Below, one piece after another: positions 27,701 through 34,066 of a stretch of 64,000 nucleotides of DNA. The notes beneath the pieces were generated by a model. It was not told the DNA's origin, made no database searches, and saw only the letters and a list, made by a program, of their open reading frames with translations. Each line of letters starts with the position of its first letter. The first letter of the stretch is position 1. The position numbers and the translations under genes are program-made. Origin of the DNA: Epithemia pelagica (lineage: Eukaryota; Protista; Bacillariophyta); contig OX337231.1 in the NCBI GenBank assembly GCA_946965045.2, positions 1,798,001 through 1,862,000 on the forward strand, written 5' to 3'.

Positions 27701-28499
<799 letters not shown>

Positions 28500-28935
28500 C
28501 TTTTTGAATCACTCCTGTCGACAAAGGATCTCTATCTCAACGGTGTTCGTAAGCGAGCTGTAGGATGTATGGGGCAGCAATGAGAGCGACGGTGGGAGTT
28601 GGGAAAGGCCTTTTGGGGTTACTGGGACGAATCAAAAGATCTGACATATCTTTTTCTGACGTAATATTCCTGAATGTATTGTCCTCAATCCCGTGGTGGT
28701 TTGAGGGGTGGGGAAATGAAGAATGCCCAAACTTGGGGGATTCTCCCAATGGATTTCCTTGAAATTCCACGTAGAAGGCGTGAGCGCGGGCCGCTTTTCT
28801 CTATGTATTAGAAATAATTAGAAATGATTCCCACGCGGCAGATCTTACTTTTGGGGGTTGAGGTTGAGGGTTGGAGTCTCACAAAAAGTTTTGATGTAGT
28901 ATCGAGGATAATACGGAACTGGAACATCGAAAGAT

Positions 28936-31014
28936 ATGGAGGGATCAGTCATGGTCAGTTCCTCCTTGCTAAGCATGTCCACTGGAATGCTCGTCAGTGG
29001 ATTCTTGGACTGGGAATTATCGGTGGATAGAACTGGCAGCAAGGCGGCGGAGCACCGAGAGGAGCAGACGAAACAAATTGATCTCAGTACTTCTACGAAG
29101 ATGTCCGAGGTCCTTCGGGATAAGAAGAATCTCGGGTTAGGAAGGACACCAGAGCAACAAGAAATGTCTTTTACAAGTAAATCCTTGTCTGGCGCCATCA
29201 GATTCAAACACGAAATGTGGCCACAATATGATCCAACAACCCGAGATCCGACCATCAATGAGCGGTCCAGGAGCTACACCACTTACGAGAATGGCCGAGT
29301 CATTATCTCAGATTCTAAGGTTCATTGACAAAGAGAATCAGAACCGAACCTCGGACCAAGGAGAACCATGTTGTGTGCTGTACGATGCAGATTGCGTCCA
29401 AGCTAAGCTCTTTAGGTTTCTTGAGGAATGCATGGCATTTCAAAAGGCTGGCAAAAACATGGAAGTTACATTGGGCTACCATTACACGAACCAGATGTAT
29501 TTGTCGACAATACGAGAGCATGGGTTGCTTACGCGAGCCGAACGCCGACATCGTAGGATTCGTGTTCAAGACAATGGATCCTCGTTCGGCGATGGAATCT
29601 ACACTATAAGTACGGCCAACAACTCCGTCGATTCACTAGAGGTAGAAAAGCTCACAGTATCTCCGTGCGCGGAATTCAGAGTTCGAATCGGTTTGCGTTT
29701 CGTGGATTTCGCGCTCATTTGGACGCTGGTCTTTTCGTGTTGCGACTTACTGGAAACACAAAGAAAAGCAGCCTCTCCTCGAACGGATTCAACTCACGAT
29801 CTGATTCTACGGATATTGACACTGACTGCCCTGACTCGCTGACCCAACAACGTGGTATTGGCAAGGATCTCTTGGTATTACGAAAGTCTACGCAGTGTCT
29901 CGTTATCGGAGAGTTCAAACCGAATTCTTTGGATCGGTCGGAGATGGCTGAACAGTTCCTAGTAACACATGGCAAAATTCGGAAAATAGTAAAACAAGTT
30001 ACTCGCACAATTCAAAATGGAGACGTGTCCATGTGGGATACACATGACACGAATGATTACTTTGGTACAGCAAATTTGTCAGGCACGAGGATTGCGCCAA
30101 AACGTGAGGTTTCACCAAAGTCGATTGCATTCGACTATCCTTAGCGGAGCTCTGGCGGAGGGACAACAAGAAGATACAATGAGTTCATCTGATCATGTTA
30201 TTCGACGTGGAACTTTGCGTTATGGAGCTCCACGGCAAGGCCTCATGTTGACAAGCATAAACGGTTGCACAGACATGTTCCCATCCAATCAACTTGCTGC
30301 CGATGAGGAATGCAGCATATGCTTTGAAAAACTCAAAGGCAGTTGCAACTTGGTGAAATTGAAACTCTGCCCACATGTGTTTCACCAGGAGTGTTTACGG
30401 GAGGCACTCCGATTTGATCCAAAGTGTCCAGTATGTAGAAAGAATACTACAGAACCTCAAGGCAAAATGCCATCGGGTAAAATGACGATTGAACTAGACA
30501 AAAACTTAGCATGTGAGGGCTATGAACCAGGAACATGGCTGATACGATATTCAATGAAAGCTGGGGTTCAAAAAGCCTACCACTACAATCCCGGTGTCCC
30601 ATATCCATCTACGGTACGCAAAGCATTCATTCCCAATACAAAAGAAGGACGAAACCTATTGAAGCGCGTTACCTATGCATTCAGTCGAGGCCTGACTTTC
30701 ACCGTAGGAACCTCTCTAACATCGGGCAAAGATAATGTTATCATATGGTGAGTAGATGCGCTGTTTTGGCGACCCTTGCTTCAGTTCGGTACATGGCTCA
30801 AGAAAACGTTTTCAACAGGGGATCTATCCATCATAAAACAAGTAGCAAAAGAGGACCTTATGGGTACCCAGATCCTGGCTATTTCATAAATTGCAACGAG
30901 GAGCTTGACGCTTTGGGAGTCCCTTCACATGACGACTCTTCCTTGCAAATTGTGTTTGCAACGCGATGTGCAACGAGTGTCAATTTTGGCTTCCTGTATG
31001 AGGACGAATTGTAG
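28936..31014 (+). CDS. Multi-exon PARP-like ART domain + RING + Deltex C-terminal (DTC) protein; the joins are partly uncertain
   Basis: The ART-like part has GYHYT..I..HGLL..G..FGDGIYT / SNRFAF..GLFVLRL..G / DLLVLRKSTQCL. The RING reads CSICFE..CPHVFHQECL..CPVC. The DTC reads PQGKMPSGKM, AFIPNTKEG, FTVGTSLTSG..W|GSIHHKT and GYPDPGY. Intron 30748-30818 is firm. Introns 29177-29270, 29606-29679 and 29989-30082 (or 30070) are inferred. Confidence 0.72.
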
Positions 31015-31304: not shown

Positions 31305-33896
31305 TCAGGTTTTTCGTAAAAAGAAGGCGTCAATAGTTCCGTTTGTAGACTTTGTTGTCCGTGATTTTTTCTGTGCCCTGCGACTAGTGGTCGTAGAAGT
31401 TCGTGACCGATGCCGGACAATTGATGAGCTTTGGTTGTGAGGGTGCAGTTGTTGTTCAATTTCTGTCCGGATATCGGCTGGGAGTTCGGCCAAGACTGAT
31501 GGGTCGATGGAAGAACTAGAAGTAGAGTTTGTAGCAAGACTTGGAGCAAAGGCGCAAACCTCGTGAGGGTATGCTTGTAGCTCTTGTTCGACTTCAACGC
31601 GAATATCCGCCGGTAGTTCTGCCAAAACAGATGAGTCGATGAAACTCGAGACAGTGGAAGATTTGGTAACATAAGGATCAGCATTTTTGTCTATATCACC
31701 CTTGTCGTCCATGTTGGAACCAGTTTTGTTGTCATGTCTTTGCTGTGTGGTAGGCATGGTTTTAAGATAAAGCTGTGACGAAATCCTTGTCGCAGGAGGC
31801 TCCGTCGATGCAACGTCTTGCGTCAGCTTTCCCGGAGTGCTTAGTATTCTCCGGGAGTGAGCCAAAGGGCTGATCGTCGATTGGACTGGGTCCTCCATGT
31901 CTTGAAAATTGGTCACGGCCAGATTGAGGCGAGTCACATTGATTCTTCCTGGAGTGCAGAATACGAGGGCCTTTAACAAGGGTTCGACGGTTGATTTCAA
32001 TAAATGACGTCTCGCTTGTGGATCTTTGTTGTGGAGGTAGGACTTGCCATCAAACCGACACTGCTTCGATCGTGTGACGAATGGCCGCCGTCGTCTCTTT
32101 TGTCCTTGTGGAGGAACCTTTTGAATTCCATTGACTGATGAAGTTTGTTGAAGTTTGGCGGGGTCCACCACACGAGCGGTACAGCGGAGCGTGGTAGGAA
32201 ATGCTCGTTCCGGATACGGCGACGCTTCCTGACGTTCATCCACAAGTATCGGCAGTCGAACAAACAGGGATTCCATGGCTTTCCAAACGGATTCACGGGT
32301 GACATTGGTTCCTCGTTGAAAGGAATCTTCGACCGAGACTTGTTTCGTCAAACCACCATTGTCGTCCTCGATTTGACTGGTATCCAATCCAAGACACAAT
32401 TCCCGCAGCGTCGTGGCACGAGTCTCGGTCGTGACGTCGCCGACGTCCTGGTGGTGATGAATCTTTTTTCCTTCCCGACGGGACGGAGAGCTTGTAACTA
32501 GTGTTTGTAAGCAACTTTCAATTTGCCATTGAGGAACTTTCAACAAATCATGACACGTCCAAAAGGCCTTTGGCGTTGTTGCTCCCTCTTGCTTTTGTGA
32601 TGATGATTCTTTATCATTTTTTAAGAAATACAACTTTTGGTCGATCGCTCCGCCGGCGCCAGAGTGTGTACATTGCAAGCATGACTGAAGCGCACGGAGG
32701 GTGGCGTTTCCCAAGGAGGGGACTTTTCGCAGAGGCATGGGCAAGAGTATGGATGCACTTCGCCAAGGAAACAACACATTGAGTGAATTCGGTTTGTGCA
32801 AGTCGGAAGTCAATTTGGCCAGGAGAGGTGAGACTGAAACGCCCAGGGTGACGGTAAAGCCTGTCTCTTTGTAAATTCGCTGTCGTACTTGTTCGCATAA
32901 TGCCGCCGCCACTGCCAATCGATTCATGCACTCATTTTGAGCCACACGTGCTAAGGCAGCACCTTTTGTGCCGGTTGTCGGAACATGATGCACACTCTCT
33001 CGAACAGAAGCACTCGTCGAGAAGCCACAGTCCCCCGTGTTGTCAGTACTGTGATGAACCGTTGCACGGGCTCCAGACTGTGCTTCTACCACCACGACTC
33101 TTGCACTAGACTTGTCCTGTCCATATACAAACGCATGGCTGGGCATCGACATGGGACGATCCTGGTTATTCTTGTCCATGACAGCCCCGACCAGGTCGGT
33201 CAAATCGGCAAAATTTTCATCCATCCCCCCTCGTCGTACTGGTACATTGATCGATGGAAAAGATGACTTGTTCCTCGACTGTGTCCATGCCTCGTTGTTT
33301 TCAGAATCTTGCTGTGATGGTTGTTGCTTATCGACCGAGGCTGCCGCTAAATCCTGCCAAGCCTGACGAAAAGAGAGGTAGATGCGACGAGAATGACGGC
33401 GATAGCGTTCTAAATCACTTCCTTCAACAATTAGCAAGGATGAACAAGCGGCATAGGCAGATTCTCGAGATTGCAGTTTCTGCACTCCGTAGTTTCGGGC
33501 GATATAATTACATGTGACAATGATATGCTTTTGTCCAATGGCCACAGGACGGTCTCTCGGTACTCTTCCCTCCACCTCCTCGCATTGACAATAGAAACAA
33601 TCAACATCTAAATGAACAATCGTGCGAGACCACAAATTGGTGCAGTATTCATATATGCTGTTGTTCTTGTTGTTCCAGGCGTTGTTGGCGTTCGGCGAAC
33701 CATTCTGGGCGGCAGTGGTGCCGTGGTCCTTCATCAACGCAAAGGCACCCGCGTCATTCACATCCGGTTCGTCGTAATCGTCGTCATCGTCATGGCTGTC
33801 ACTGCTGCTGTTGTTACTACTCTGACTGCTGACACTTCGATCGCTATCGTATCGATCAAAGGCGTAGTGGTTACCGCTCCAGGAGGCCAAGGACAT
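31305..33896 (-). CDS. POLI: Y-family DNA polymerase iota
   Basis: IVHLDVDCFYCQCE, QKHIIVTCNYIAR, GMDENFADLT, SPLLAKL..HKPN, and two C-terminal UBM-type repeats (ID.SVLAELPADIR.E.EQ). Confidence 0.88.
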   Translation of the reverse strand: MSLASWSGNHYAFDRYDSDRSVSSQSSNNSSSDSHDDDDDYDEPDVNDAGAFALMKDHGTTAAQNGSPNANNAWNNKNNSIYEYCTNLWSRTIVHLDVDCFYCQCEEVEGRVPRDRPVAIGQKHIIVTCNYIARNYGVQKLQSRESAYAACSSLLIVEGSDLERYRRHSRRIYLSFRQAWQDLAAASVDKQQPSQQDSENNEAWTQSRNKSSFPSINVPVRRGGMDENFADLTDLVGAVMDKNNQDRPMSMPSHAFVYGQDKSSARVVVVEAQSGARATVHHSTDNTGDCGFSTSASVRESVHHVPTTGTKGAALARVAQNECMNRLAVAAALCEQVRQRIYKETGFTVTLGVSVSPLLAKLTSDLHKPNSLNVLFPWRSASILLPMPLRKVPSLGNATLRALQSCLQCTHSGAGGAIDQKLYFLKNDKESSSQKQEGATTPKAFWTCHDLLKVPQWQIESCLQTLVTSSPSRREGKKIHHHQDVGDVTTETRATTLRELCLGLDTSQIEDDNGGLTKQVSVEDSFQRGTNVTRESVWKAMESLFVRLPILVDERQEASPYPERAFPTTLRCTARVVDPAKLQQTSSVNGIQKVPPQGQKRRRRPFVTRSKQCRFDGKSYLHNKDPQARRHLLKSTVEPLLKALVFCTPGRINVTRLNLAVTNFQDMEDPVQSTISPLAHSRRILSTPGKLTQDVASTEPPATRISSQLYLKTMPTTQQRHDNKTGSNMDDKGDIDKNADPYVTKSSTVSSFIDSSVLAELPADIRVEVEQELQAYPHEVCAFAPSLATNSTSSSSIDPSVLAELPADIRTEIEQQLHPHNQSSSIVRHRSRTSTTTSRRAQKKSRTTKSTNGTIDAFFLRKT

Positions 33897-34066
33897 GGCC
33901 GCAATTTCTCTGGCAGCTGGGAGCAAGTTTTGCCTGCTACCACATTAGAGGAATGTAGCTACCCAACCTCACTCATCATGAGCACATAACCCATTTTCCA
34001 TTTTGTCTTCCATGTGGAACGCTTTCGCACCCGCCATCACATACATCGTCATCATCCACATTTTTT

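Follow-up and report, generated by a model that had tools for sequence, protein, structure and literature searches.

The stretch of DNA considered here, called the window below, comprises 64,000 nucleotides of contig OX337231.1 of the diatom Epithemia pelagica. On its plus strand, at 28936-31014, lies a gene that in its intact form encodes one protein of 645 amino acids, with a PARP-like ADP-ribosyltransferase (ART) domain and a Deltex-type ubiquitin ligase module, composed of a RING finger and a Deltex C-terminal (DTC) domain, on a single chain. The copy in the window is a disabled (null) allele, and an intact copy is present on the sister haplotype.

Two sources of sequence from outside the window are used throughout. 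The first is L001, a 1.6-Mb contig of an ENA assembly, reached through P0001 in a protein search with ART exon 1; P0001 is an open reading frame (ORF) call on the L001 allele and is 99% identical to the query. The second consists of four public sequencing runs that cover the stretch, of which X1 to X3 are DNA-like, with unspliced contigs of both alleles, and X4 is RNA-like. That X4 is RNA is presumed from the variation of depth from gene to gene and from two contigs that skip frame-preserving segments. All run contigs are Logan contigs and can be mosaics of both alleles. Alignment A2 compares the window with L001, and alignment A1 contains 107 full ART domains of the family, with a mean column identity of 28%. 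In the window itself, ORF translation shows two reading frames that alternate over five ORF pieces, and the parts of the gene are as follows.

28936..29605, plus strand: exon 1, N-terminal extension and first half of the ART domain (GYHYT, GDGIYT); from the ORFs and from an L001 ORF whose ATG matches 28936.
29169, plus strand: lesion 1, an extra T in a T run; alignment A2, window against L001.
29369..29998, plus strand: PARP-like ART domain, containing intron A; family alignment A1, homologue model and Foldseek.
29606..29679, plus strand: intron A, 74 nt, phase 0, within the ART domain; joint 29605>29680 in X4.
29606, plus strand: lesion 2, intron A donor ATAAGT in the window against GTAAGT in L001.
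29680..30747, plus strand: exon 2, second half of the ART domain, disordered linker, conserved pre-RING segment, RING and most of the DTC domain.
30115..30144, plus strand: lesion 3, 8 bp (CACTGCAA) missing after 30115, leading to a frameshift and to TAG at 30142-30144.
30311..30436, plus strand: RING-H2 finger, C-x2-C...C-x-H-x2-H-x2-C...C-x2-C; Pfam zf-RING_2 and PDB matches.
30458..30921, plus strand: DTC domain, containing intron B; PF18102, DTX2 6y22 and DTX3L 3pg6.
30748..30818, plus strand: intron B, 71 nt, GTGAGT..CAG, splitting the Trp codon of ...VIIW/GSIHHKT in the DTC domain.
30819..31014, plus strand: exon 3, end of the DTC domain (IHHKT, His 30829-30831; YGYPDPGY; NEEL, Glu 30901-30903), C-terminal tail and stop codon.

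A sequence-only reading of the window had recognised here an ART followed by a RING and a Deltex C-terminal domain, and the motifs that it named are all present on direct reading: GYHYT, with its His codon at 29480-29482; FGDGIYT, with its Tyr codon at 29600-29602; DLLVLRKSTQCL, with a Leu codon at 29869-29871 and a Gln codon at 29893-29895; the RING-H2 sequence CSIC...CPHVFHQEC...CPVC, with all eight zinc ligands; and PSGKM, IHHKT, GYPDPGY and NEEL of the DTC domain. It was also right that the ART frame ends at 30144 and that the RING frame has its next ATG at 30179, a gap of 34 nt. It overlooked intron A and the frame change at 29169, and it proposed a phase-0 GT-AG intron at 29989-30082 (or 30070) to bring the two frames together. 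The frames are apart in the window because this allele has lost 8 bp.

The comparison with the sister haplotype makes the state of the window allele plain. L001 and the window share 98% identity here, and the gene model of L001 has three exons, two canonical introns and 645 codons. The interval L001:4993-5805 is free of stops, from MAEQFLVTHGK... to ...DNVIIW, and reaches from the ART helix across the RING to the DTC domain. At 29169 the window has TTTT where L001 has TTT; an X3 contig likewise lacks the extra base, and P0001 reads ...EMSLQVNPCLAPS... across the site. As a consequence of the extra base, the ORF from ATG 28936 stops at 29328, short of the ART domain. The sequence CACTGCAA, absent in the window after 30115, is carried by both L001 and X4. 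Given the 8-bp loss, the donor mutation and the upstream frameshift, the window sequence cannot make the fusion protein. There are also 19 synonymous and 12 non-synonymous differences between the alleles; one of the latter places an Arg in the window at the Pro of SSNPFAF that is conserved in the family.

The form with the 8-bp deletion is found in X1 to X3; its depth is 77 in X1, where the flank stands at about 136, and 117 in X3, where the flank stands at 327. Across 29982-30103, X1 holds two variants, at depths of 76.6 and 59.3, the second of which carries exactly the single-nucleotide polymorphisms (SNPs) of L001. By these depths, the window allele is genuine and no assembly slip. The intact sister haplotype is present in the same samples and is the form that is seen spliced in the RNA-like data.

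Further differences were observed near these sites. At 30163-30165 the window has three extra in-frame bases relative to L001 and X4, giving an additional Gln (...AEGQQEDT...) in the disordered linker, 48 nt past the 8-bp deletion, and the linker appears to be an indel hotspot. At 28885 the window is without 14 bp (AACCACAGTCTTTG) that are present in L001 (3922-3935) and X3; this site, about 50 nt upstream of ATG 28936, is likely promoter or 5' untranslated region, and the loss brings the structural differences of the window allele to four. In X1 and X2 there is also a 26-letter loose end (TGCTTGGACTGTGTAATTACCGGTAG) before 28810 that matches neither allele as aligned, and it may be a further structural variant upstream of the gene.

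In the RNA-like run, a contig over exon 1 begins at 28896, and the joint 29605>29680 removes intron A, bringing ...GDGIYT together with SSNRFAFRGF...; homologues read GDGIYTSSNP across the same junction. Contig 29 of X4 carries the joint 30746>30818 (cut +1), which is the splice of intron B, at a depth of 35, and the Pfam match to the DTC profile carries on across it. The same contig is unspliced and continuous from 29691 to 30746. Relative to the window it has 8 extra bases (CACTGCAA) after 30115 and 3 bases fewer at 30163, and the allele rebuilt from these differences has one open frame from the ART into the RING-DTC, with a protein that is the same as that of the L001 model. Thus the fusion proposed earlier stands, as one polypeptide in L001 and in the RNA-like data, and the intron that was to join its halves does not, its place being taken by one continuous exon.

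At intron A, X4 holds both a spliced and an unspliced contig. The spliced one extends from the L001 SNP at 29584 minus 30 to the SNP at 29690 plus 30 and has a single difference on either side, whereas the one that keeps the intron shows no difference from the window allele over that interval. This pattern fits a GT allele that is spliced and an AT allele that retains the intron. A cryptic GT at 29610 was considered as a rescue donor and rejected by arithmetic, as the resulting 70-nt intron gives the wrong frame.

The intact protein thus consists of a short N-terminal region, a divergent PARP-fold ART with an H-Y-L triad, a flexible linker of about 65-75 residues, and the RING-H2 and DTC domains. 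The same architecture recurs in other diatoms. At E <= 0.001 the search of 1.84 billion cluster representatives with ART exon 1 yielded 269 proteins, and 54 of the 150 best ART matches also carry the RING-DTC, so the two domains do co-occur in homologues. Complete single chains with RING and DTC by Pfam include P0004 (683 aa), P0005 (626 aa) and P0009 (557 aa). Members with a taxon name come from Thalassiosira profunda (KAL9182764.1), Thalassiosira sp., Skeletonema marinoi and S. dohrnii, and others from MMETSP transcripts and marine metagenomes. Two word-based protein searches returned no named taxa beyond Thalassiosira and Skeletonema, which is not evidence of absence from Phaeodactylum or T. 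pseudonana. These relatives are annotated as hypothetical protein, deltex-like or RING-type E3, never as PARP, and their ART part has no annotation. The 'deltex-like' KAL9182764.1 and UniProt A0A7S2Y3H6 belong to the same family as the window protein and have the same ART-RING-DTC architecture.

P0004 and P0005 are the partners of the window protein in the tree of ART domains (support 99), within a clade of 11 members that are all fused. Elsewhere in the tree fused and ART-only members interleave, and some of the ART-only rows are probably truncated predictions. A feature search of the ESM Atlas returned no large cluster with both PARP and DTC, which is weak evidence only. One MMETSP transcript product of 475 aa, P0002, has two tandem PARP-like domains, both with H-Y-E, and no RING-DTC; therefore, the family also exists as stand-alone and duplicated ART proteins.

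The identity of the RING and DTC domains is, on sequence grounds, certain. Pfam zf-RING_2 matches directly upstream of the DTC domain at 9.9e-11 (42.2 bits, cut-off 27.3), and PF18102 matches the exon 2 part at 1.7e-26 (93.4 bits) and the exon 3 part at 1.1e-7 (32.6 bits), against a cut-off of 25 bits. In the PDB the best matches of the Deltex half are DTX2 (6y22, 6.6e-19), DTX3L (3pg6, 2.8e-17) and DTX1, and those of the RING are RNF4, Arkadia and DTX RING domains. In DTX2, His582 and Glu608 catalyse the ubiquitylation of ADP-ribose (PMC7615817). In the alignment to 6y22 their counterparts are the first His of IHHKT and the second Glu of NEEL, and a single numbering offset of 387 would account for both. 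GYPDP is preceded by Tyr here and in DTX3L, but by His in DTX2 (alignments to 3pg6 and 6y22).

The identity of the N-terminal domain was less readily established. Pfam gave no match to the separate ART ORF pieces of the window, and phmmer of the ART pieces against the PDB returned nothing meaningful. Across A1, PF00644 (PARP) matches 45 of the 107 domains, all below threshold, the best member reaching 20.1 bits against a cut-off of 26.7. An AlphaFold2 model of residues 60-245 of P0005, the closest full-length homologue, has a predicted local distance difference test (pLDDT) value of 90.2 and a predicted template-modelling score (pTM) of 0.86. With this model, the best 50 Foldseek matches in the PDB are all PARP catalytic or PARP-like domains (PARP10, 12, 14, 15, 4, tankyrases, PARP1 and ZAP), led by PARP10 5lx6 (E 7e-5, probability 1.00), with template-modelling (TM) scores of about 0.5. 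The best 30 Swiss-Prot matches in the AlphaFold database (AFDB) are likewise all PARP-family, active and inactive, and probabilities in the PDB and Swiss-Prot are 0.97-1.00. Among AFDB clusters the best matches are mostly PARP catalytic domains, the family's own near-copy in UniProt aside; that entry is labelled only 'RING-type E3 ubiquitin transferase (Fragment)'. A shape search of the ESM Atlas also gave PARP clusters, with TM scores of 0.55-0.70. The ART fold that the sequence-only reading had assigned is therefore matched in the homologue's model, and the N-terminal domain is, as modelled, a PARP-fold ART beyond the Pfam family boundary. The family is invisible to BLAST and Pfam and is seen only by structure.

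The consensus of A1 reads GKPxxVDIGYHYT...GLLT..ER...NGSxFGDGIYTxNNPxxFxxYG..GLLVARL.G...VLxxSxQCxPL. All domains have its G-L, G-x-G-x-Y and Q, nearly all have the His of GYHYT, and the H-Y pair is kept in 106 of the 107. A profile of A1 against the PDB gave weak ART-superfamily matches (DarT 0.008, ZAP 0.44), which were used for residue mapping only. In the alignment to ZAP, the position eight before the invariant Gln (Q-8) aligns with a ZAP triad residue. This position is Leu in the window, which bears out the H-Y-L triad that had been counted out from the sequence; such a triad would be of the mono-ART type. Across the family Q-8 is Glu in about 40% and hydrophobic in most others, with one-residue differences in loop length blurring some calls, and among the fused members it is E, V, M, F, I, L, W or A. 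An aromatic residue lies 11 positions past the triad Tyr and matches Tyr907 of PARP1. In the model the core lies between an N-terminal helix and a long C-terminal one. The C-terminal helix (model residues 160-185, consensus HxxLQxxxDxxFN) is conserved and is encoded by the stretch 29989-30082.

In the model of full-length P0005, the ART (40-250) and the pre-RING, RING and DTC region (331-597) are confident, the linker between them (253-328) has a pLDDT below 50, and the overall pTM is 0.50. The 8-bp deletion of the window falls in the corresponding linker.

We propose that this is a three-exon diatom nuclear gene, broken in the window, whose intact product is a single-chain ART-Deltex protein, and that the writing of ADP-ribosyl-ubiquitin (ADPr-Ub) in cis is its most likely mechanism; we give this reading a probability of about 0.7. 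With NAD+ as donor, the ART domain would mono-ADP-ribosylate itself or a bound target. The pocket of the tethered DTC domain would then bind that ADP-ribose and activate its 3'-hydroxyl through the conserved His-Glu pair, and the RING would bring a ubiquitin-charged E2, with the result that ubiquitin is esterified onto the ADP-ribose. The net outcome would be ADPr-Ub written by one protein, as the sequence-only reading had inferred; the part in stress, DNA-damage or antiviral signalling that it also suggested would be conjecture. What was observed is the gene structure, the lesions of the allele, the domain identities, the conservation of key residues and the recurring architecture, and each of the enzymatic steps is what we infer from them.

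Several points weigh against this proposal. For all members the enzymatic reading draws on sequences and models, and the fold was modelled on P0005, which is 46-51% identical to the window protein, and not on the window protein itself. No family member passes the Pfam PARP threshold. The ART motif is H-Y-T where PARPs have H-G-S/T, which may mean a different binding of NAD+ or no transfer catalysis. The full-length model gives no fixed geometry between ART and DTC. On the side of the gene, X4 is only presumed to be RNA, and the allele-specific splicing at intron A is read from two short contigs of low depth. Moreover, a start at ATG 29228 together with use of the AT donor at a low rate could give an ART-only protein from the window allele.

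With the mono-ART enzymes PARP10, PARP12, PARP14 and PARP15 the diatom ART shares the H-Y-hydrophobic triad, Gly-x-Gly-x-Tyr and the aromatic residue at +11; it differs from them in its identity of only 12-16%, in having H-Y-T, in its flanking helices and in TM scores of about 0.5, and it is too divergent for the Pfam PARP model. With DTX1, DTX2 and DTX4 the protein shares the RING-H2 and DTC domains and the motifs TSLTSG, IHHKT, GYPDP and EL, but in place of their N-terminal WWE domains and proline-rich region it has the PARP-like ART. The closest functional parallel is the human PARP14/PARP9-DTX3L system, in which an interferon-induced mono-ART works with a Deltex E3 and which likewise combines an H-Y-L PARP-fold mono-ART with a RING-DTC and has the DTC catalytic His and Glu; by analogy, ADPr-Ub would be the expected product. 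In animals, the members of this system are separate chains held by KH domains, with macrodomains, RRM and WWE (PMC13224862). The diatom protein, unlike these, is one chain with a disordered linker, and no macro, KH, RRM or WWE domains were detected by Pfam in the window pieces, P0004, P0005 or P0009. Thus, the diatom protein is not a member of the PARP9/PARP14-DTX3L system, although it may work in a similar way.

The main rival to a catalytic ART, which we consider unlikely but worth weighing, is that the ART-like domain is a non-catalytic binder of NAD+ or ADP-ribose, like the PARP-like domains of PARP9 or ZAP/PARP13. As such it would steer the Deltex ligase to targets ADP-ribosylated by others, or would only supply NAD+ or ADP-ribose to the DTC pocket. 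The sub-threshold PARP scores and the H-Y-T motif agree with this, as do the varied third triad position of the fused members and the presence of ZAP among the best structural matches (TM 0.53-0.57). However, the known inactive PARP domains have lost such conserved residues (ZAP has Y-Y-V, PARP9 has Q-Y-T), and H-Y-hydrophobic is the signature of the active mono-ARTs PARP10, 12, 14 and 15, which are also the top structural matches. The near-invariance of the His and the invariance of Gly-x-Gly-x-Tyr and Gln over 107 diverged domains argue in the same direction, and we therefore prefer an ART that catalyses transfer.

It is considerably less probable that the ART targets nucleic acids, as DarT does, and that the Deltex module ubiquitylates ADP-ribose on DNA or RNA ends. 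DTX enzymes do ubiquitylate ADP-ribose on nucleic acids (PMC10810221). The best sequence-profile match in the PDB is the one to DarT, over the His motif, and Pfam gives weak matches to DarT in two members and to Tox-ART-HYD1 in seven. Yet the DarT match spans only 28 residues, the whole-domain structural matches are all PARPs, and Pfam detected no nucleic-acid-binding domain in the window pieces and the three complete relatives.

That two genes are involved, an ART ending at 30144 and a RING-DTC starting from ATG 30179 and cooperating in trans, is very improbable. The window sequence alone reads in this way, and prokaryote-style gene calls on L001 also give two products. The second of those calls, however, begins inside the ART domain and runs stop-free into the RING-DTC, the RNA-like contig carries both halves in one uninterrupted frame, homologues with the two on one chain number in the dozens, and the 34 nt between stop and ATG are, as the sequence-only reading held, too few for separate genes. 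Least probable of all is a functional window allele whose frames are joined by the intron at 29989-30082 (or 30070): a GT at 29989 and an AG at 30081-30082 exist and removal of the 94 nt would give the needed frame change, but this intron is not used, since the X4 contig with the intron B splice reads through it, no such joint occurs in X4, a run that does show both real introns, its sequence codes for the conserved long helix after the ART core, and in L001 it would be superfluous.

The single-chain gene has a neighbour on either side. On the minus strand at 27701-28300 lies a gene for ubiquitin fused to nickel superoxide dismutase (...LRLRGG/...; Pfam ubiquitin and Sod_Ni on the L001 copy). 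Judging from X4 contigs, it may have a spliced 5' exon at 28494-28608, and its depth in that run is about 15-30 times that of the ART-Deltex gene. At 31305-33926, also on the minus strand and thus convergent, is a gene for an 873-aa Y-family DNA polymerase (Pfam IMS), with a faint match to the ubiquitin-binding UBM. One X4 contig of 4138 nt spans the ART-Deltex gene into the polymerase gene, so the 3' transcript ends of the two probably overlap.

No paper on an ART-Deltex single chain was found in the literature, and recent reviews of Deltex, ADPr-Ub and PARP14 are silent on it; an earlier mention in a natural-history review of ARTs is possible, and so the fusion is probably, not certainly, new. 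ADPr-Ub is a recently recognised hybrid modification, and in animals its PARP and Deltex writers are separate proteins whose cooperation in cells is debated. Their recurrent covalent fusion is 'Rosetta-stone' evidence for both activities acting sequentially on the same substrate, and a chain of about 550-650 aa with both would offer a compact reagent for the study or production of ADPr-Ub in vitro. For annotation, the lesson is that an apparent split gene was a haplotype-specific null allele, neither an odd intron nor two genes.

Diatoms have been listed among the lineages without identifiable PARP genes (Citarelli 2010, PMC2964712), and the finding revises the view that they are without PARP-type enzymes. 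It is tempting to go further, at what we would judge slightly less than even odds. Diatoms may hold a large, fast-diverging and cryptic family of PARP-fold mono-ARTs, with about a third of the best-matching representatives fused to Deltex and acting as natural single-chain writers of ADPr-Ub; ADPr-Ub signalling would then be older and wider than the interferon and PARP14-DTX3L context of animals. The presence/absence heterozygosity at this locus, with an intact and a triply broken allele, would fit a family in conflict-type turnover, for instance in antiviral defence.

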